From NCBI RefSeq assembly GCF_964204865.1, contig NC_135257.1, positions 11,904,001-11,968,000 of the forward strand: 64,000 nt of DNA, written 5' to 3'. Of the stretch, positions 4,696-29,329 are shown piece by piece. This stretch comes from Styela clava (lineage: Eukaryota). Below the pieces are notes generated by a model that saw only the letters and a program-made list of their open reading frames with translations, was not told the origin of the DNA and searched no databases. The position numbers and the translations under genes were made by a program. Numbering within the stretch: position 1 is the first letter of the stretch; every line of letters starts with the position of its first letter.

Positions 4696-5224
4696 AGACT
4701 CATGGCTAATCTACTCCCTGACTCCTGTACTTCCAAGTACAGAAGTGCTCAAAAAGCTTAGCGCTGTTCTGAATATTACTAATGACAAAATTTCAAAAAA
4801 GTTTTGATACTTCGCTTGTTTTGAATTGTACTTGAAATTTCCTCAGGATGAATATGTAAATCATATCCTAGCAATTCTTAATGCTATTTTACTTTTTCGT
4901 CCGACTAGAGATGAGTGTTGCAAGTGAAAAAAGCTTATTTTCAACCAGCATTGTTCCTAGTGCAGTAGTGTATATACCTACCGTCTACCGATATGTACTT
5001 TTCATCAGTTTGTAATTATTTTAAAAGCAACTCACACTGTTCTGTGTGATGTGAATTGACGTTTTTCTGTGTAAATCTGACTGATAAAGAATATAGCCCT
5101 TACGTTGTTGTAACAATCAGGTTATTACAGAATTAATTTATTCACATACTGTTTTTTAAGAAACTCAAATCTAAAAAATAGCCCGGATATTTTTTAACAA
5201 GTTTTGTGGAAAAGTTGTCACAAG

Positions 5225-7708
5225 ATGTCAGAACCTATGGAGCAGTCGGACGAATATGACTCAAATATATCAGATTATCCATCAAGATGGCTTCATTTAC
5301 GTAAAGTTTTAGAACGTGGTGGGCCATTCTGTCATCCTGATTTTGATCCTTGTCCAGACACTTTGAATTTTATGAAAGCAAATTGCAAAATTTTGGTTAT
5401 TGGTGCTGGAGGTCTTGGATGTGAACTTCTCAAGGATCTTGCATACAGTGGATTTTTGAATATTGAAGTTATTGATATGGATACGATTGATGTTTCAAAC
5501 TTAAACAGACAGTTCCTTTTCAGAGAAAAAGATGTTGGGAAACCCAAAGCTAATGTAGCTGCTGAATTTATTAATAAACGCATTCCAGGTTGTGTAGTAG
5601 TTCCTCATTACTGTAGAATAGAAGATTTTGATGCTGATTTTTATCGGATGTTTCATATTGTAGTCTGTGGTTTGGACTCCATTGTAGCAAGAAGGTTAGA
5701 CTCTCTTAATTTATTATTAGGACACTTTGGCTAATTTTGCAAGCGAATAAGTAGTTAGTTGAATTTGTATTAAAAAATCATCAACTCAAATGCGTCGGTA
5801 TTGTACTGATTTACTACTGTAGTATAATAAATATACAGGGTGGGTGTAAAAAATAGTAACATTTCTTTGTCCCACTCTGTATATTGTGAAACACATGCTA
5901 GGGAATATATTGTAACAGTTTGTGTAATTGATTTTCAGTTTTGATTTGAAGCCTTATTACAAAATGTAACTTAGATAACAGTACAAGCACAGGTGCGTTT
6001 GGAGTTTATATATTTTGCAGCAAAGAAACTTTGGTTTGAATTATTGCTTTGTGAGTTGTTCAATAATGTTAATCTGATTTTTCACAGATGGATTAATGGA
6101 ATGTTTCTGAGTCTACTTGAATTTAATGATCAAGGAGAGCTAGATCAAACAACTATGGTTCCAATTGTAGATGGAGGAACAGAAGGTTTCAAGGGCAATG
6201 TAAGGGTTATACTTCCCGGGATGACTCCATGCATCGAATGCACTCTGGACTTATACCCTCCTCAAGTAAGACCATTATATTTGGATATAAATTTTATGTA
6301 TTTTCTCTTGGCAACAGTGTGTCAATGCTCTATTTTTTTAGTTTTGTGTAGTTGTATGAGACAGAACTTGAATATGTGTCTGAAACCCAATTGAAAAACC
6401 TGATTAAATTGTGATATTTTGTCAATTTGGGGTAAATTTCTATTTCAAATAAAACTTAGAAGCAGCAGCAGAATTTATTCATTCATCCGGAATTATTTTA
6501 TTGTGAATATTAGAATACCTTTTCTCTGATTAAACTGAATTATAATTTAATTCCAGAATATAATTCAAACAGAAAATCACAAAAATGTTGACTTTTTCCA
6601 TAATTATAATTTATATACCTTTACATATAAAGTTGTACGAGTAATTTGAATCATTTTATGAAAACTTGAAACGAATGTCTTCGTTACTTGGTCGCACTAA
6701 ATCCATAAGTATGCTTTAATAATAGAATCCTAGACATATTCCTATGTATGATGGGTTTACTTGGTGTATATTTATTTTAAGGTGAATTTCCCAATGTGCA
6801 CTATTGCTCATACTCCGCGGCTTCCTGAGCATTGTATAGAGTATGTTAAAATCTTGTTATGGCCACAAGAAAAACCATTTGGACTCGATGTTCAAATTGA
6901 TGGTGATGATCCAGTCCATATCAAATGGATTTTCAACAAAGCAGTTGAAAGGGGAAAAGATTACGGAATCGAGGGAGTAACATACAGATTAACTCAAGGT
7001 GTAATAAAGCGTATTATTCCGGCTGTGGCGTCCACTAATGCAGTGATTGCAGCAGCATGCACTTTAGAAGTTTTGAAGCTTGCGTCAAGTTGCTGCATGC
7101 CATTAAATAACTATATGATCTTTAATGACGCCGAGGGAATATACACATATGCATACGAAGCTGAGAAAAAAGAGGATTGTATAGTGTGCAGCCTACGGCC
7201 ACAGAAGCTAAAGTTTCGAAAATCTGACAAGCTGCAAGATGTTCTTGACTATTTGAAGGTGTGTTTTTTGTTTAAGTTGATAAGATACTTAGTAACTCTA
7301 TCAATAAGATGGCTATTCATAGCAATTTAGAATGGATTAAAAGGTTAGTTCAGATCAATGTTTTTGTCTTGGTGTGAAGTAAACTTCCCAAATACAGTGC
7401 TTGTCACTTTGACATTAAATAGATCTTCCGTCAATAAAAAACATTCCGAGAACTTCCTAATTGCTTGCTATACTGATTTACAGGAGAATTCTGCTTTACA
7501 AATGAGAGCTCCCGGTCTCACTACAAGTGTTGGTGGAAAGAATAAAACTCTTTATATGAGTACGGTCAAATCTATCGAAGTTGCCACAAAACCAAACTTA
7601 CAGAAGACATTGGATGAACTCGACATTCAAAATGGACAAGAAATTGTAGTTGCAGATGCAACTTCACCGAACCCATTAATTTTTAAAATGCAGTATGACG
7701 AAAAATGA
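5225..7708 (+). CDS. UBA3: NEDD8-activating enzyme E1 catalytic subunit
   Basis: Exons 5225-5694, 6088-6265, 6782-7258, 7484-7708. Motifs [41 protein letters not shown], catalytic [26 protein letters not shown] and a C-terminal E2-binding domain. Confidence 0.97.
5836..5879. mobile_element. 44-bp Tc1/mariner-type MITE remnant
   Basis: TA-CAGGGTGGG...CCCACTCTG-TA: 9-bp imperfect TIR with TA flanks, in UBA3 intron 1. Confidence 0.45.
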
Positions 7709-9096: not shown

Positions 9097-12000
9097 TCAC
9101 CATGAATCAACAAGTTCCTTCATACTGTTCAATTTTTTAACAGAATCTTGAATCTTCTGACCCCTGACAATTTAAACATTATTCCATTTAGTATAACCGT
9201 AGAAACCTATCATATTAATGTTAGGAATTTTTATATAGTAATACGAAGGGGGTATATCATCAAATAGTGATGTATGTGCATGGTGAGTATATATTTGGAA
9301 TATAAGTGACAAGTGCTCTTTTCTTAGTCAATGCATGTCCACAATTTTGATATCAATTCATTTACCTGTATTTTACTGAATAACTGTTTATAAACATGTT
9401 AACAATTTTTTCACAAAAAGTTCCTCAGTTATGCCATTGTTGAACCGTATATATATTCACCATGTAACTTCAATGGAGGTGAGACAAGGTAGGACAAAGT
9501 ATGTTTTTCACTATGAGAAGGGACCTCAAAAAAGGAGATATTGTGTCTTTGAAACGACCAAAGCAACTTGGTGAATGGTAAAAAAATAACTTCAAGAGAA
9601 CAAAAGATCAACATACTCTTCCAACAAAATATCTTTGAATTTTTGTACTTGTACAGAACTTCCAACGGATGGAGTTCTTTGCCTTCTTGTGCTGTTTAAT
9701 TTTTCATCCTCAAAGTGCTGTTTGTTTTGATAGTCGTGTTTGGTCTTCACTTGTTTGATCCTGTTTTCCAAGTGTTTCATTCTATCTGATATATTTCTTA
9801 ATTCTTTTGACATTTCAATTTCAGCCTGTAAAAGTTTGTCATTTTCCAACTTTAATTTCCATTCACCATTACTAATAATACAAAATGATGTTAATATTAA
9901 TTTGAAGTCTGATTTCTGAAAAATCCTTGGTCATATAGGATAAAATGGAATGGGCTTTCGTAATCATTATGGTACTAAACACATATTCAGTTGTAATTGT
10001 TAGACACATTTATGGGCCATACCTTCGACAAAACTGGAACTTTGGACTGAGTTTGTTTTAGAACCATAGCTAGTCTTTCTGACAAAATTTCTTGCTGATC
10101 AACACAATCTTCAAACTTTTCCGCAAGTTGTTCAGCAGTTTTCGTCAAATCCGACCTGAAATGTTGCAACATGGTAATTCTGAAGACTTGAATAGTAAAA
10201 ACAATTAAGGGCTAGACGGTCTGCCCTGGTTACCTTCATATTTTGTTACTGTATATTGCATTATATTCAGCATTTAAAAAAATTTGTTATACCAAGCATT
10301 ACACAGGTTTTAGCACAAAAAATACATGCGTACATTAACAAATGAAAAATGGGACATTTAAGCCTGATTGATAGAATACACTGTCAACAAATGTAGTAAA
10401 ATTCTCTATATCAAAAATTTAAATAATTAAGAATTTCTTATACAATCTTAATAACATTCATTAAATTCTGTGAGCCATTTTGTTTACTATTAATTGTACG
10501 CATAATTTGCACAAATTCGGTATTACAATAGCAATAAATATAATATGACAAGAAAGGTTTTCGCTACTTTGCAATACAGAATAATTCCCAACTGAAATGA
10601 TTAGACGAAGGGAATATAATAGAGTCAGTTGTGCAAAATTCTGTGTTCTAAAGTCGCATAAAATTTTGGTCTATCACCTTCATCTATTCATTTCTGTAAC
10701 AAATTTATTCAGTATTGCAAAGTATCAAAACTATTTTCTGTATACCTTTTTTGTTTGAGCTTATCCAGATCATCCAATTGTTGTTGCTTCTGCTGTGCTA
10801 GTAACCGTGCTCGTTTCATGATAGCATCTTGAGCAATTTTTTGTTTCAAAATATATTCTTTCCTCAGTATTTGAGTTACTCTACCTATGAGACGACTAGC
10901 TTCAGAGTCCATTACGGTATCCCTTGAAGATGCCTCATACCTGTCAAAATAACGATTTTCTGGTATAATATGTTAATTTGGCGCAGTAAGATAATAATTT
11001 ACACAATAAAAAATGCAATGACCATACACCAGCTTACCTCAAAATGGGTTGAGAAGAATCTCTTTGAAGTATAGACCTGAAAACATGATAAATATATAAG
11101 TCTGATTCACAATTAATACGGTAACTATACAAATGTCAGTTATCCCGCATAAAGTAAGATTAAAATCAACAAACCTTATATGATCTTGGAAATCCATCAG
11201 ATTCATCGTTGAAGTCTGTATGGATGAATCATTGTCTGAAGTAAGTGGAACTATAGTGTCGTCATCATATGAAGGCAGTGGAGGTGGTGTTGGCTTGAAA
11301 ATAGTTCTGAACACAACTTGAATTAAGTAAAAAAACATATGCAGAACATTGGAATTTATCAACAAAAACCTTAAATCTAACGCCAACAGCAAGAATCCAC
11401 TCAGCAAATTAGAATAGGAATAAAGACAATATACTATACGTACAATAAAGGAACAGCCATACAATGATTATCAGCAGTTAGGCAAAGTAGAGAAGGCCCA
11501 AATAGTGGATTTGTTGCAAATGTGAAACCTTTCAATAAACAAGGAGCACTTGATGGAGTTGGTTTAGTACAGACTATATGTTCGACAATGCATGGTTGAT
11601 CCTGAAAAAAAAAACGAGAATATCATATAGTAATAATAGCAATTAGCAAGAGCAGCAAAAAATCTAAAATTAAACTCAACGCTTGTTTTTTACATTAAGT
11701 TGAGCAAAGCAAACTTAACAATTATTCTCAGTGATCAGAGACTATAGCTTGAAATCATGAAAAAAAGACTCACTTGAGCTATTTCATTCAAGTTATCTTT
11801 ATCCTCGTCAGCAGCTTCAAAAAACTCTGTTAATTTATCAATCCATGGCAAAACAACAGCATGAACACCCACTCTAGTGCAGCAATGGTAACGACAATAT
11901 AACAATGGATCTGTAAAATGGAGAAACATGAATTTGGTTCAGAGATTCGAAGTCTGGGAATGTTTACCGTTGACGCCGAATCAGTTTCCCTTGCCGATAT

Positions 12001-15000
12001 TCCAAAGAAACCAGAATTTCAAATTGAGTTTGAAAATACGACTCTGGCTCAGTTCACAGCTCCGTTTTGTGCTAATATATATTAAATTAAAATCTAAGAC
12101 AGTACTTTTGCTTAAAAAAATGTGTAGTCTCAATAATCAACCGATATAAAATATGAAGCTACATGGTATCACTAAGGCACCCTCAGGAATCAGTTCGAGT
12201 GGCATCTCTCCTGTATGAGGGGAGTAGTATACCCGCTCTCAAAAAACAAACGGGGGTCAAACACCAGCCTGATTTTACCCAGAAATGAGTTAAGACTTCA
12301 ATAATGTTTTTAATGCCTAGTATGGCGTGTCAACCGTTGAGCCAAAGGCATATAAAGTCACAACAGTTAAAGAGTTTGGCCACTAGAAGTAAGATCGAAG
12401 TCTGTGGTTCGTCGAGTAGGCCTTTGTACCAAATATCTTCATTTTTTACCTTTATACTGAAAGTCTATTCAACATAGATTGAGAAGGCAATCCATCAAGA
12501 AGCAGATACAAGTGATTACACCATTTATATTTATTTCAATATCAAACAACAAATATGCAAAATAAGAAAATTTGGAATCCTAGAAATACAATAATGCAGA
12601 GATACACAAGAATAGTGTAAAAAATAACATTAATGATGAATAGCACCAAATTAAAACTGAGAGATGACGACCTTCAAAGCACCCTTCCCTCTTTTTAAAA
12701 ATTTTCTTTGATCGAGATGCCGGTGATGCCATGTACAAAGTAGCATTGTATTGTTTCTCAATCCTGTCACTGCATTGCAGGCTCCTACCAAATCACTACA
12801 AAATGACAACAAAGATAGTTATTGACAGACCTTAAAAATCAACTAGAAAAAAAAATATAAACTACTGTTTCCATTAACAAGGAAGAATAATTTTCTTGTG
12901 ATATGAGCAGCGTTTGATAATAGGAAAATATTATCGACTTTGAAATTTTCACTTTGAATATCTCTTCCTGATAGTGTGTTTTAATTGATAAAGCTCTCAT
13001 AAATATACAAATCAAGTCATCTGAAAGCAATAACTAACAATAAAAAATAGGACCTGTATACAACTCTGAAAGACCTCTCTCCATGCCTAACAACACTTTC
13101 TATATCTCCATATTTCTGTAGCTCCCTAAGAAACTCATAAAAAGTGTATCTTGATGCAACATTTAAAAAGATCTGAAGACAAGCATTGCAAGATTTCAAG
13201 TTTAAACAAACAAACAACCAGCAATACTAACATTACTAAGTTACCAATAGGACCAATACCAATTAATGCAAGAAATTCTTGCAATATCTCAGGGAAAATA
13301 CTGAATATTTCTGAAGCCAAAACATACCAAAATTGCATTTAAATTTTTTATATTTCAATTTCTCTTCTCTTGGATTCTATCTTCAAGTTTAAATGACCGT
13401 GATTCAAAATCAAGTTGAATATAAAAAATGACAAAAACCTCTACTGTAGATAATGGTGCCTGAACTGCAGAATTTGATTCCAAAGACGATTTCACTGCCT
13501 TTTCCAACCTGTCCTCTGTATGAACAAACAATTCAAAAAACTAAATAATTGAGGCAAACTAATAAATGGCAAGAAGACAAACTAAAAAGACAACAAAGTC
13601 TACCATCAACCAACCTTTTTTATGAAGATAAAGCTGACTGGGTTTTGGACTAAAATATGTTATGCATGGAGGTTCATGATGTTCAACATGTTCTTTATAA
13701 CAAGGCATATCCCTGAGCTGCATCAATTCTGAGCTCTGTTAAAATTGCATTGAGTTTATTTTTCCATTCAGTTAAGATCTTGGCTCAATTACTCCCACAG
13801 AGGAAAATTATTGAATCCTGCCAACTTCTTTAAAATAGAATATATTCCTTGCGACTGAATATCCACTCATGAATTTGGCTGCAATTTCAAGAATAAATCT
13901 GATTTCTGCCAATGAGACATGATGCAAACTAAGTTCACATGATGATTAAATGTAACATAGTTCGCTTAGTTACCTTTATTCTCCTGTTGTGCATTTCCTC
14001 GTATAGTTGTCTTGAAACAGGATTTGGTAAATGCGAAATCATCCGGCACACTTTGTTAAATTCATATATCATTGAAGAAGGTCTTTTCTCTTTTGCTGAC
14101 ATCTTCAAATGTGCTGCAATATTCTTTGAATAGGTATTATCTACATAACTCTGTATGACATTCCGGGTCGTCGGTACCTCAGTTTTAAATTTGGGATCAT
14201 CAATAAAAGAATTTTGAGGTGGATGGACTGGAGTGCTTCTTACTGGGTTCCGAAAGTTAACTTTTCTGGTAGAAACTGGCTTCAGGTGCATTCCATGAGA
14301 AAGGTCAAGACATAGATTTTTGATGCTGTTTTCTGATACTAATTGTCCTTTCCTGAAACATGAAGCAGCATGATTTACTTCATTATCTTCTGAAATGTCC
14401 AATTTAGGCTTCAAGTCTCCTAAAATATCCTGAATTTTTCTGTGATCCTTTTTTGCTTTCTGTGATATAGATGGCTTACTGTCTGCAGTCGGCATCATGC
14501 TACAATTTGATCCATACGGAGCAACAACTCGCAAAGCATTATTTATTGTGCCTGGCATTTTCAGAAGCAACCTAATACAACTTGCATCCGCAACAAACAA
14601 TGTTCCACAATACAAAGGGCATATTTTCAAATTGTTTATTCCCTGACCAGAATGTTGCATTATGATCAAACAATGGATAACTATACAACGTCAGAATAAA
14701 ATCAATTGTAATATCACAGAGGCCAGACAATAGGTATTTTCTTGATGTTTGTAGTTATTTTGATTTTTGCGTAACATTGAGCCTATAATTTTCAGTCATA
14801 AAATACCAAATACAGGCCAAAATGCTACAACTGACTATGATCCAATGCCGAGCAAATTTTTCAATTGCAACACCAGCATGTACAACTGCTTTAATCTTCC
14901 AAATTATTATAACTAAGTGGGATATGGCGGCTAGGACGGCTAGGCCTTAGGACAAACCCAATTTAAATCACCAACTACTCGTGTATCTATAATTTGGATT

Positions 15001-18000
15001 ACTCTGCAGTAAGGTTGAACCAAAGACAAACCAAGTCAGTTTTGTGTCATGTTTACTAACCACTCTATATATATAATATACCCAGCTAAAACAATAATAT
15101 TCAACACGATTCTTCAGATACATACGCCAAAAGCATTTAATCTGACAGGTAGTAAAGTAAAGTTAGGTGGTAAACACGAAAAACTATGTAAGAATACTAC
15201 AAACTGTTGGTGAGCCATTTCATTTGAACACAAACTTTTTTGAAAGAGAAAATTTGTCACTAACCGGAATGTAAGGTAACTGTATGATTTTCTGATTCAA
15301 AATCTCCTCCATCTTCTTCACCCTTTGGTCCCAGATCGATTTCTACAGTTTCATAAACAAACAATGTTGGAGCAGGAAATTCAGCAGATAGTCCTTTGGA
15401 TTGAACAGAAAGAACTGAGGCAGGCCATGAAGCAGTTGACTAAAATTGTAAGATATTTAATTTTAACATATAAGATAACAAGCTAGCAAATGGTGAAACA
15501 GAACATAGGTTGAAGTTCCAGGGATGGCCAATACCGAATAGTTCACTATTTCGAATACATTCGAAATTATTTTTTTCGAATATGAAATTTCGAATACTTC
15601 GAAAATAAAATCCACTAATTGAAGCTTATTTAATGTATGTAGGAATTTCCATACAATAAGCAATGGAATAACTGCTATCTACAAGTTACAACCTAGCTAT
15701 ATTACCAGGCATTTCATATTTGCAGATTATTGCATGATATATATTTGATATACCATGAGTCATGTTAACAGAATTAAATTAATACGACAATAGTGGTATC
15801 GATGATGAATTTGAATATTTGCGCAACACAAAATCATCCTAGTAAAACGCCCATACTTTTAAATACCAACCAGGCAAGGGATAAAGTATGAGGTATTTTT
15901 CCGACTTGTGACAATTTTTTCGTGAGTACAAAAATACGAATCAAAAATTAATTATATTCGGGAATTTTACCACACATTTTAAGTCCGCCGTTGTATGTAC
16001 CGTTGTATGTTTGAGTAATAATACTTTTATTATTTTATAAATATGAAAATAGGAATCAAAAACTATTTATAATCGGGTAGTTTACCACATATTGTAAGTC
16101 CACAGATCGCTGTTGTATTTTGTAAATACGAAAATCAAAAATTAATATTAATCGCGAGTTTGCCACTAGGGATGCCACTTTCGGATTTACGAATCGGATC
16201 GATTCGAATCGCATCTTTTCCGAATCGATTCGAATCAGATTTACGCGATTCGGAAAAAGAGAGCGATTTAGCGAAAAAAAAACATTGAACGTTTGTTAAA
16301 TCGTCGTTTTCGGCGGCTTTAAATCTGCCAGAGTGTGTTTATGCGGCACTCCAAATAACGCCAAATTACGGGACCGAAAAAAAAACATTGAACGTGTGTT
16401 AATCGTTGTTTTCGGCGGTGTTAAAACTACCGAATGCGTTTATGCAGCACTCCAAATAACACCAAATTACGGGACCGAAAGAAAAACATTGAATATTTGT
16501 TAATCGTTGTTTTCGGTGGCGTTTAAACTGCCGAATGCGTTTATGCGGCACTCCAAATAGCAACAAATTACGGGACGTAAATAAATGAAAATGAATTTTT
16601 CGTGATTGACTTTTTTACTTGTCTGCCGTCATTTGTTTCAAGTTCGACACAACACACTCTTTTACGCATCACTCGAGATGATGTGTGGCGTAATTACCAG
16701 CAAACTGCGAGTTCAGTTTTCCACTAAATAGCCGAAGTTTCCATTATGCGCGAATTCAAATGGATCGTATACCTGAAAATTCGTGTCAATTTTGATGAAA
16801 ATTTTCAACAGCACACCTACGCTGCCACTAAGTTATTGTACGCCCTGGCATGATTGGATAAAGAATCGGCTACCGACGTCTGGATAATGTTTAATTTTGA
16901 TTGAAATTTAATTTAAACTTTGTTCTGAGAGCAATATTTCGCGTACATTTGAAGAGAACTATTGCTGAATGAGTTCATCGGCCGGCAATGTTAATTTACA
17001 ATCATGTATCTCATCCTAAAATATATTTTTATTTTGTTTGCGTTTGTCAGGCTTCCACTCGAGTGGCGGTAAACGAAATCAGGGGGACATAATGTAATAG
17101 TACATACACGTCTTTTTTCAGCTGTTACCAAAAAAAGTAGTATTTACTTTTAATTTTGTTAGCGCGATACAAGCGGATAAAACATTTCGGATTATTTCGA
17201 GCAAATGTCATAACGGACAGGTGGGAGTAAATAATACTTGAGGAATGGCAACTTGTGCACTGTTTTACATCAACACGTGGCAGATTTCATACCAGACCGA
17301 GCATACGGTGCGAATGTCGTCTTACTTTAGCCCCAGCGACCATGTTTGATCGAGATAAAGCGTCAACCAATTATCGCTCGTCAGCGCGGCGTCCATTATG
17401 CACATTTGGACTTTCTGAATTACGAAATTAAACGTAGTCCACATTAATAATGAAGCCCGAGTTAGCCAATAACGCTTGTTTGCCACAAATAATACTGTCT
17501 CTAATATTTATGGAAATTTTTGTTCGCAATCGTAGTCGGATGAACGATTGTTTTTATCGAAATTAATTTAATTTAATCGTGGTTAATTTTATCGTCTTCA
17601 ATCATATTCTTGTAAGCATTTCCCATTTATAGTAATTCAGATGCAATTAGAATGTTTTTGTCGTATTACTCTATGCTGCTAGCATAAATATAAAATATTG
17701 TACTAAGATTTTGAAGATAAAGAATCGGTAATAAGGCCGTCCCTAATTCAATATAACAAGAAGGGAAATACCACGGTCACATATACTGGTGTGGGACAAG
17801 GGAAAGCAGTGCTGTTACTGTGTTTACGACATAACAGTACAACTGTTCCCTGCTTATTTTCTCATATGAATTCCATCAAATTGCCTCAGCCCTGATACAA
17901 GTATAACACAATAACTCAGTAATGTAAGACTCACAGATAAGTTGCAACAGCAAGTTTTTCATCAATGCATTTATTAGTGATATCTATGACCTACATTTTT

Positions 18001-25977: not shown

Positions 25978-26316
25978 TCACTCATTCTTAATCCTCAGTT
26001 CTTCAGGTATGAACCCAGCATCATTTTCAATGCATGTAACACAAAAGCGTTTTTTATGAAACAGGCTACATTTATCATCGACACAAACAGTTGCATTGCA
26101 AAGAGAACAGTGACCTCCCAATACTAACACTTCTCTTGTCTGAACAAAAGGATTGTCCATTATATAGACCTCTTCATGGAAAGTGAGCTTTCTCACACGA
26201 GAAGGTCTTTTTCCAAAATAACGGTATGGAGCTTCTAGTCCACAAATAGAGCAAACAAAGCTAGGTAAGACTTTGTCAGTTTCCTTCTTTTGTTTAACAT
26301 CCAATGATTCTTGCAT
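25978..26316 (-). CDS. CDPF1: Cysteine-rich DPF motif domain-containing protein 1
   Basis: Single exon. F.CSICGL.APYRYFG..P...LTFHEEVYIMDNPF...LVLGGHCSLCNATVCV...CSLFHKKRFCVTCI matches the recalled CDPF1 cysteine pattern. Confidence 0.88.
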   Translation of the reverse strand: MQESLDVKQKKETDKVLPSFVCSICGLEAPYRYFGKRPSRVRKLTFHEEVYIMDNPFVQTREVLVLGGHCSLCNATVCVDDKCSLFHKKRFCVTCIENDAGFIPEELRIKNE

Positions 26317-26866
26317 CACATTACTGGAATTACGACTTAATTGTTCTATTTCAACAGTAAACTACTATATATATATTAATCCTGCATGAAACAATAACGG
26401 TCCATTACTCACAATTTAAACTTGACAGAAAGTTGAATACTAACAGACATGATTTGGTGATCGACCAAACCGTTAATGGGGTCTAACAATATGCATATTC
26501 ATTCAAGATCTTCTTTGAATCATTTTAAAACATGAAATTTAGAGAATGCACCAAATTTTACTGATGTTTTCATTAAATCCACATAAATTGAGATGGAAAT
26601 GGTGCCAAATTCTTATGGAACACACTTTTTAATACATTAGTAATTTTTTCAAGTGATTATGATCAGATCATTCCAAGTCAATATGAAAACAATAACTTTT
26701 ATTATTTGGTAATGGATTTTGAATAATTTATGGTCAGCAACATAATTCTCTTGACATTCATAAAAACTGTTAAGAGTTTATTCAGTTCAAAATGACAATA
26801 ATTTTTTCAACCAATAATGCAATTCCAATTAGACAGAATGTATCATGCTATTTTATACCACAATGT

Positions 26867-28360
26867 TTATTCATTGCCAGCCATATCAACATCATCCTCA
26901 ATAGTTAAATCCTCCAACATCTCCTGTAATGTAATCTTCGGCATGCTCTCATCATCTGTATCAGTTGGTACATGAGAGCGATCAACATAAACATCCACAT
27001 TTTTCCTGAATTCTTTATCTTCCTCTAAATCTTCCATAAATCCAACAAAAGATTCATCATCCGAAGCGGTATTTGTAGCCAGTCTTCGGAGTTTCCAATT
27101 TCTGCGGCGTCTTCTCCTCTGTTTGTCACCAAATACTTTTTTAACAAGTATAACATCAGGTACATCTTGTTCCTTCATTTTATCCAATTCCACATTGCTC
27201 TGATTTGAATTTCTCAAATCGTATCCCAGAACCGTGTCACCAGGGTTTAATAAATGACCAAGATGTGTGACAGTATGAACATAATCCTCATTTATTCCTA
27301 ATTCGCTTGCTTTCACAACCCAACAATCTGCCAAAAGATGTTTGTGGGATTTTGCACCCTCACCAGACTTTTGCTGTCTATTATGAATAGGTTCGATTTC
27401 CATTACTATATATTGTATGAGATTTTTAGAAGAACTACAGGAGTAAAAAGGGTTTCGCCAGTAAGCTGTTCCATTGACCTCGCATAACTGTAGTGTTTTG
27501 AAATCGATCAAATGAATACAATTTGTTACACGAATACAGAGAGCAAGTTGATCCATATTTCCAAGTTGTTGAGCAAGCTTTTTAGGTAAACAGACAATAT
27601 CATCCTTACAGACTGGAGGGATTTCAACAGAAAAAGTAGTTTTATAGTTATAGGTACTTGTATGGACATCATGCGAAATTAACTGCTGTGCTGACTGGTA
27701 ACGACAAGGCAACATGCTCATAAGAAAATCAGTAAATTTTCTGGCATCTTGTTTAGATGAATAGAAGAAATCAAGCCCATTTGGATTTTCAGATAGCTTC
27801 GTACATGTAGAGTGCATTTTATGTTTCAGAATAATTTGTTCCAAATAATAAAATGTCTTCTTATGCGTTGTCTTTTGTCTAGCTTGTACAACAGAATTCC
27901 AGAAATCTTTTGCTTCTATCCTATGGCAGTCATTGCACATATGATTATGAATAACAAATTCGACGACAAAAGTTTGCTGTAAGAATGTGCCACCATCAAC
28001 TTCTTTTTGAATAGCAATTTTAACTTTAATTCGTTTAGAATGGGGTTCAGTCCAAACAAATGCAGCATCCACCAAACGTACTTTTGACAGCGTTGACTTG
28101 AGCCGTTTTAAACAAATTGCGAGTAGTTCTCGCGATTCAAGAGCTGCCTTTGTCCAAGCATTGGGAGGAGAATGATATCTTTCACAATTCCTGCACATTA
28201 GCAAATTTCCAGACTTTGGTATACCATCAGTAATATCAACACGAGAACGAAGGCAGTCGACACATGTATTACTTGGATTGGGTTGTATAGGAATGCCGCA
28301 ATCACAACACAATATTGTGTCCATTGTTTGGGTTGAGGGCATTTCACTCATTGTTTCCAT
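26867..28360 (-). CDS. NMD3: 60S ribosomal export protein NMD3 (intronless CDS)
   Basis: ~497-aa ORF with ILCCDCG.PI.PN..N.CV.CLR, LESRELLAICLK, FVWTEPHSKRIKVK, HKKTFYYLEQ, THLGHLL.PGD, an NLS-like RRRRRRNWKL and a C-terminal NES-like LQEMLEDLTI. Confidence 0.97.
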   Translation of the reverse strand: METMSEMPSTQTMDTILCCDCGIPIQPNPSNTCVDCLRSRVDITDGIPKSGNLLMCRNCERYHSPPNAWTKAALESRELLAICLKRLKSTLSKVRLVDAAFVWTEPHSKRIKVKIAIQKEVDGGTFLQQTFVVEFVIHNHMCNDCHRIEAKDFWNSVVQARQKTTHKKTFYYLEQIILKHKMHSTCTKLSENPNGLDFFYSSKQDARKFTDFLMSMLPCRYQSAQQLISHDVHTSTYNYKTTFSVEIPPVCKDDIVCLPKKLAQQLGNMDQLALCIRVTNCIHLIDFKTLQLCEVNGTAYWRNPFYSCSSSKNLIQYIVMEIEPIHNRQQKSGEGAKSHKHLLADCWVVKASELGINEDYVHTVTHLGHLLNPGDTVLGYDLRNSNQSNVELDKMKEQDVPDVILVKKVFGDKQRRRRRRNWKLRRLATNTASDDESFVGFMEDLEEDKEFRKNVDVYVDRSHVPTDTDDESMPKITLQEMLEDLTIEDDVDMAGNE

Positions 28361-29329
28361 TTTCAGGTTCAAATTAAATTACTTATATTTGATCATGTGT
28401 GATTCCTAAAGAAAATGTGTTACTGGTAATTCAGATAATAGATATTGCCAGGAATGACTAAAAGTCTACGGAATATTTCAAAAATAATATTTTCAAATAC
28501 ATATATTATTTCCTACCTCTCACTATATATTTTCTAAATCATGCCCAACAATTTACATGTTTATAAACTTGAGATGTGCATACATATGTAAATATGTCAG
28601 ACTTCGGTAAGATTAAGTTCATACATAATAACTTCAAGTCAATAAGAAGTTCAATTAAAAATTTAAATTTATTTACAAATATTAGTACATATCTCATCTA
28701 CTCCCTAATTAGGTTTAGTCTGCTAAATTTTTTGGTTAATATTACACCAAAACCAGAAAACCATATGAGAATGTACAAAATAAAAGTTGCTTCAAAAACA
28801 AACACCACTAACAAACATCATCCATGTGAAATGAACACATAGTAAAATAGTGTTCAAAGGAATTATCTGTCATAGCCTAACTGCAGAACTGCATTAGCTG
28901 GGTTACAACAGGTCATTACTTTTTACAGTTTTATAGCACTGCGTTGGACCTAAAATTAAACAAACTTACAGACATACTGTTACTATACCATTATACCAAA
29001 AAACACATTAACATTATTATGCATATAATTAGAAAATGCATGCATTTTTTTTTCTTCAAATGGATCCACAATGTAGATTATTCAATAAGTAAATAATATA
29101 TAAATTAAATATATGTTAAGACATCTTGTGTACTAAAAGTGAAGAAACATATATATCAGTAATATCAAGATAATTCCATCAGATGTAATATTCCATATAA
29201 TCCAGGGAGTTCCAATAATTCATTCGTTGATTTCGTAATACAAATTACATCGTTTATTTTTAATTATTTAGCATAAAAAAACTTAATTTTAGAATCCGTC
29301 ACAATTTATTACATATCATGGCAAGTTCT

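Follow-up and report, generated by a model that had tools for sequence, protein, structure and literature searches.

A probable DUF4523/TEX56 orthologue with five exons nested on the same strand within an intron of NUP88 in the tunicate Styela clava

The window, by which we mean the whole 64,000-nucleotide stretch of Styela clava DNA analysed here (contig NC_135257.1), carries the nucleoporin gene NUP88 on its minus strand. The question raised by this locus is whether one intron of NUP88 holds a second complete gene in the same orientation and, if so, what that gene encodes and how its mRNA would be made. Between 25338 and 9592, the ORF pieces of the minus strand all match the Pfam Nup88 profile colinearly. 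Profile positions 334-367 are covered, weakly (E 0.11), by the exon whose last base is 15265, and positions 369-414 (E 2.4e-11) by the exon that opens at 11910. Since these flanking exons match consecutive parts of the profile, 15264-11911 is one NUP88 intron. The nested coding sequence, 14660-12651, is entirely within that intron and shares the strand of NUP88, as the initial annotation had proposed with the same intron borders.

The initial annotation had further called the nested gene hidden, which it is not. A search with the translation of exon 1 alone led to Styela clava LOC120345454, named "uncharacterized protein" in RefSeq. The cluster contains two RefSeq products, XP_039270839.1 (288 aa, referred to here as P0001) and XP_077971025.1 (382 aa, P0003). 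All the in-frame exon pieces are exact substrings of P0003, and the codons split between exons give E270 and S335. Because XP_077971025.1 is identical to the five-exon model, the nested gene is already in the public annotation as an exact 382-residue model, and it is only the older 288-aa model that missed exons 4 and 5. The tests on the whole protein described below were run on the public P0003 sequence, which contains every exon translation exactly. The features needed to follow the argument are these:

11911 to 15264, minus strand: host NUP88 intron, 3354 nt, holding the entire nested coding region, with flanking exons that match Pfam Nup88.
13974 to 14660, minus strand: exon 1 (E1), 687 nt, 229 codons from the RefSeq ATG at 14660-14658; by coordinates and phase, equal to P0003 residues 1-229.
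13615 to 13735, minus strand: exon 2 (E2), 121 nt, phase 0 in and 1 out; equal to P0003 residues 230-269.
13439 to 13515, minus strand: exon 3 (E3), 77 nt, phase 1 in and 0 out; equal to P0003 residues 271-295.
13054 to 13172, minus strand: exon 4 (E4), 119 nt, phase 0 in and 2 out; equal to P0003 residues 296-334.
12651 to 12795, minus strand: exon 5 (E5), 145 nt including the stop TAA at 12653-12651; equal to P0003 residues 336-382.
12530 to 12535, minus strand: predicted poly(A) signal AATAAA, 115 nt past the stop of the nested gene, from the sequence.
14681 to 14682, minus strand: acceptor-like AG, ..TGACGTTGTATAG followed by TTATCC, 20 nt upstream of ATG 14660, from the sequence only.
14558 to 14556, minus strand: ATG of Met35, a conserved alternative start, from the starts of the orthologues.

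The exon structure proposed initially was recovered in full, with the same coordinates, GT..AG borders and phases, and so was the AATAAA that had been placed about 115 nt past the stop, at 12535-12530. The coding sequence totals 1149 nt, or 382 codons plus the stop, and runs through phases 0, 1, 0 and 2. The four introns measure 238, 99, 266 and 258 nt (861 nt in sum), and all are GT..AG. From exon 1 to exon 4, the donors (D1 to D4) are GTAACT, GTTGGT, GTTTTT and GTCCTA. Exon 2, the one with the GTTGGT donor, has the acceptor ..TTTTAACAG; the acceptor of exon 4 that keeps the frame is ..TGCTTGTCTTCAG followed by ATC, with the boundary at 13173/13172. A genome search found the nested gene as a single copy in the 377-Mb Styela clava genome. 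An origin as a paralogue or a retrocopy was considered and discarded, as the genome is without a second copy and the gene has introns.

The older RefSeq model departs from this structure in an instructive way. From a start at Met35, P0001 keeps to exons 1-3 but then continues past the exon 3 donor into intron 3. That read-through is why it is without the DUF4523/RRM-fold domain described below, and the 288-aa product has no Pfam match. In the stretch 13355-13531 (minus strand), P0001 differs from the window at 3 of the ~30 residues encoded by the intron, as against ~5 of the 261 encoded by exons. This pattern fits a non-coding read-through combined with a polymorphic second haplotype or assembly.

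Other features of the window surround NUP88. Just upstream of the NUP88 start (25338) there is a Cys-rich ORF of 113 aa (25978-26319, minus strand). It is followed further upstream by a single 501-aa ORF (26867-28372, minus strand), which by eye we take to be NMD3-like. The NMD3-like ORF, the Cys-rich ORF and NUP88 are close-set and all on the minus strand, and they possibly form a tunicate operon. On the plus strand, ORF pieces at 5204-7708 by eye resemble UBA3, the catalytic subunit of the NEDD8-activating E1.

The initial annotation had assigned the nested gene to the TEX56/DUF4523 family from a C-terminal RRM-like signature, and the profile test bears this out. P0003 matches Pfam DUF4523 (PF15023) over residues 235-363 with 46 bits (E 6.4e-12), where the cut-off is 27. 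When the exons were scanned one at a time as short queries, exon 5 gave a weak DUF4523 match by itself (14 bits, E 0.043) and the others gave none. An exhaustive phmmer search with P0003 of 1.84 billion representatives returned 23 relatives at E <= 0.001, with homologues named for the family among them: P0012, the cluster of platypus XP_007667280.1, a "C6orf201 homolog" (E 1.3e-8), and P0014, an axolotl "testis expressed protein 56-like" (E 6.2e-7). Proteins without a name from Ciona savignyi, Clavelina lepadiformis and the sea cucumber Apostichopus complete the picture. Orthologues carry the identifiers LOC143447326 in Clavelina and H2Z529 in Ciona savignyi. DUF4523 is matched by 19 of the 24 aligned sequences, and the family core residues G317, C341 and W357, conserved in at least 90% of these 24 members, are present in P0003. 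An atlas based on a protein language model offered as look-alikes "C6orf201 homolog" clusters and a cnidarian cluster with DUF4523 plus RRM_1. Among relatives with a recorded species or phylum, the family is distributed over cnidarians, an echinoderm, tunicates and vertebrates. We conclude that the nested gene is very probably the single Styela clava orthologue of DUF4523/TEX56 (formerly C6orf201), with five exons and in the same orientation as its host within one intron of NUP88.

The Styela protein is alike to TEX56/C6orf201 in the motifs LPNPV..L, EPPC..Y.SP.P and PLSTV and in a basic C-terminal tail. It differs in being ~150 residues longer than the 217-260 aa typical of that family, in having a tunicate-specific segment (residues ~50-190), predicted to be disordered, between an N-terminal AL.VV.P motif and the domain, and in reading IFLNV at strand beta1, where most non-tunicate members have V.W. 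An AlphaFold2 model built with the 24-sequence alignment gives low confidence to residues 1-190, which are probably disordered; residues ~35-190 are, by this prediction, the disordered tunicate-specific segment. An atlas search with the segment 35-200 gave no usable match. It had been stated that the N-terminal 230 aa are not recognisable, and this turns out to be too pessimistic. In an orthologue, the DUF4523 match in fact starts within the part that corresponds to exon 1 (its residue 173, ~207 here), and short motifs past Met35 are common to other tunicates and partly reach beyond them. In the alignment, the AL.VV.P motif after Met35 recurs in echinoderm and other members, and ahead of the domain come conserved motifs, helical and linear: LPNPVS..LY, EPPC..Y.SP.PSQ and QAPLSTV.

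The alignment also bears on the start codon. In every long tunicate relative, the first residue is the one that aligns with Met35 (MPGT..), and residues 1-34 are unconserved, with no counterpart in the relatives. For these two reasons, the conserved start is the ATG at 14558-14556, and from the sequence comparison translation may start there rather than at the annotated Met1 (14660), in which case the RefSeq Met1 may fall within the 5' leader. The RefSeq start at Met1 implies a transcript model extending upstream of 14660. There is an in-frame TAG 12 codons upstream of Met1.

The proposal that the C-terminus resembles an RNA recognition motif (RRM) gained support from structure prediction. In the AlphaFold model, residues 196-287 form helices of moderate confidence; they are followed by an RRM topology with pLDDT >= 90 over ~293-360 and then a short extension. 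The secondary structure elements are strands at 293-298, 319-324, 329-334 and 353-357 and helices at 306-314 and 337-346. Exon 4 encodes beta1-alpha1-beta2-beta3 of the RRM-like domain, and exon 5 encodes alpha2-beta4 and the basic tail. The top Foldseek matches in the PDB are all RRMs. First is hnRNP L RRM1 (3r27_A; E 2.8e-4, TM 0.62, 26% identity), and next come SF3b14/p14, PTBP1 RRM1, PID-3/TOFU-6 and others. A sequence search of the PDB gave only one marginal match, to the same domain of hnRNP L (E 0.1), which we take to be meaningful because the fold search agrees with it. The C-terminal domain (~293-370) is thus modelled as an RRM-type beta-alpha-beta-beta-alpha-beta fold with a basic tail.

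The fold is not that of a canonical RRM_1 member. The canonical RNP1 consensus is K/R-G-F/Y-G/A-F/Y-V-x-F/Y. In P0003, strand beta3 reads E-R-S-F-R-V-V-Y, so that the RNP1 aromatics are absent, with S329 and R331 at RNP1 positions 3 and 5. P0003 also has no match to Pfam RRM_1, and it is for these two reasons that we call it an RRM fold rather than a canonical RRM_1 domain. The RNP2 motif fits in Styela, where it is I-F-L-N-V; in most TEX56 members it is V-x-V-R-W. The domain and tail together carry a net positive charge in 22 of the 22 members scored. RNA binding by the modelled domain is plausible but not assured, the alternative being that the RRM is used for protein contacts. The nearest known systems are the RRMs of PTB and hnRNP L (hnRNP L RRM1 and PTBP1 RRM1), which share the fold and likewise are without the classical RNP1 aromatics. 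The Styela protein differs from them in having a single domain rather than tandem ones, in having no RRM_1 match, and in a C..C.W.H segment on beta4 and a basic tail that are peculiar to the TEX56 family. A zinc site in the C..C.W.H.H segment was also considered; it was set aside as neither the His positions nor that of the second Cys are constant across the members. By analogy, the protein might tentatively be cast as an RNA-binding or RRM-mediated protein-binding factor of the non-canonical PTB/hnRNP L-like kind, possibly of the male germ line if the name TEX56 is a guide. A search of the paper library found no functional study of the TEX56/DUF4523 family.

The strength of the splice sites bears on whether this is a working gene. 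Donors were scored over 9 positions against CAG|GTAAGT and compared with the 193 GT sites in the NUP88 intron. The initial annotation had described the nested donors as weak, quoting sequences that are correct, and for D3 and D4 the description stands: both have 5/9 consensus positions, a level reached by 26% of the intron GT sites. It does not hold for D1, which at 7/9 equals the host donor, both being in the top 1% of the 193 sites, nor for D2, which at 6/9 is in the top 7%.

That two of the donors score no higher than random GT sites might be read as the mark of an unexpressed relic or an annotation artefact, its frame open by chance or only recently inactivated. The human family member gives such a reading some precedent, since C6orf201 has been renamed TEX56P by the HGNC and is a pseudogene (PMC9825485). 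Against it, 382 codons are intact over five exons with splice sites that are all canonical, and the domain model is confident. The relatives weigh in the same direction. Three orthologues have been recovered on short, intron-free contigs: P0002 (346 aa, on a 1311-nt contig), P0004 (346 aa, 1748 nt) and P0005 (339 aa, 1163 nt). All three are colinear with P0003 across the four junctions, without introns and without any part of NUP88, and start at Met35. Since the four introns of the window would add 861 nt, these contigs, judged by their size and lack of introns, are most simply taken for spliced transcripts from related species; being colinear and intron-free, they therefore give indirect support to the four junctions. 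Compared with P0002, the N-terminal segment, or linker, is 65% identical and the DUF4523 part 83-90%, as would be expected of a constrained coding sequence. On this evidence, we consider a relic or artefact extremely unlikely and proceed with a working gene. As a separate observation, the predicted protein of the relative P0008, on a 2898-nt Logan contig, has additional in-frame residues, RYISRT...SLRF, inserted exactly between ..VVY and SDL... The insert has the look of a short intron that was read through at the place of intron 4, which suggests, from sequence, that the position of that intron is conserved.

We propose that the nested gene would be made as its own mRNA, separate from that of NUP88. 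RefSeq models the two genes separately. The likeliest origin would be a promoter in the 600 nt that separate the start codon from the NUP88 donor (15264). With such a promoter, a spliced leader (SL) might be added at the then unpaired acceptor, or there might be none. As in every same-strand nested pair, the NUP88 pre-mRNA would have to be spliced over the nested exons and transcribed past their poly(A) site.

The acceptor-like AG in front of the start codon invites two other readings, both of which would tie the gene to the NUP88 transcript. One is that the nested cistron is released from the NUP88 primary transcript by SL trans-splicing, without a promoter of its own, as an "intronic operon". 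Tunicates do use SL trans-splicing, ~20% of Ciona genes are in operons (PMC2760879), and the AG lies 20 nt before ATG 14660. However, the acceptors for which SL addition has been described in Ciona are exclusively those with no donor upstream of them (PMC1488885), whereas the one considered here has the NUP88 donor upstream of it. It is because of this acceptor rule that we hold an intronic promoter to be likelier than release from the NUP88 pre-mRNA, which we regard as unlikely. A stronger form of the same idea, that SL trans-splicing at the intronic acceptor makes each NUP88 pre-mRNA the source of one of two mRNAs, that of the nucleoporin or that of the RRM protein, seems to us unlikely as well. 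If it were true, it would provide a built-in either/or switch, for example, between germ line and soma, and would break the tunicate rule that limits trans-splicing to acceptors without an upstream donor.

The other reading takes the five as alternative 3' exons belonging to NUP88, with donor 15264 joined to the acceptor at 14682-14681; the product would be a fusion of a truncated nucleoporin with DUF4523, its transcript ending at the poly(A) site within the intron. The frame would fit: the NUP88 exon leaves off in phase 1, and from two bases after the acceptor the codons are in frame with ATG 14660. The frame is also open through the 34 unconserved codons upstream of Met35, and Ciona acceptors that have an upstream donor in the transcript are normally cis-spliced (PMC1488885). 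It is, however, not unusual for 34 to 46 codons to be open by chance, and every long orthologue starts at Met35 without NUP88 residues. With residues 1-34 unconserved and a separate gene in RefSeq, we judge the fusion very unlikely as the explanation of the five exons, and some fusion transcripts may be made as a minor by-product. We therefore retain a separate mRNA from an intronic promoter as the preferred, still conditional, account.

The arrangement itself can be compared with nested genes elsewhere. It had been asserted that nested genes are usually antisense. That is so in Drosophila, where 71% are on the opposite strand and 29% on the same strand (PMC3814207), but it does not extend to mammals, the two orientations being almost balanced in mouse and human (PMC11694760). 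Like the same-strand nested pairs of Drosophila and mammals, the Styela pair has a small gene entirely within one intron of a broadly needed host. Of the nested genes of Drosophila, those on the same strand show the strongest enrichment for testis expression (58%; PMC3814207), a bias that agrees with the TEX56 name of the Styela gene. They are also 73% single-exon (PMC3814207), unlike the Styela gene, which has four introns; eight splice sites and a poly(A) signal are therefore added to the intron of an essential nucleoporin. Same-strand nested pairs are a well-known arrangement, and the Styela case is a tidy but ordinary one.

The new points are small: a fold assignment, a family name, a likely start at Met35 and a tunicate-specific N-terminal segment. 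A gene that RefSeq calls "uncharacterized" receives the DUF4523/TEX56 name, and TEX56, wholly uncharacterised so far and with a pseudogene as its human copy, becomes an RRM-fold family on the strength of the model. Multi-exon same-strand nesting in NUP88 offers a clean test case for the way in which the splicing of a host gene passes over splice and poly(A) sites inside its intron. For a first functional test of the TEX56 family, a tunicate whose gonads are accessible would possibly be a convenient system.
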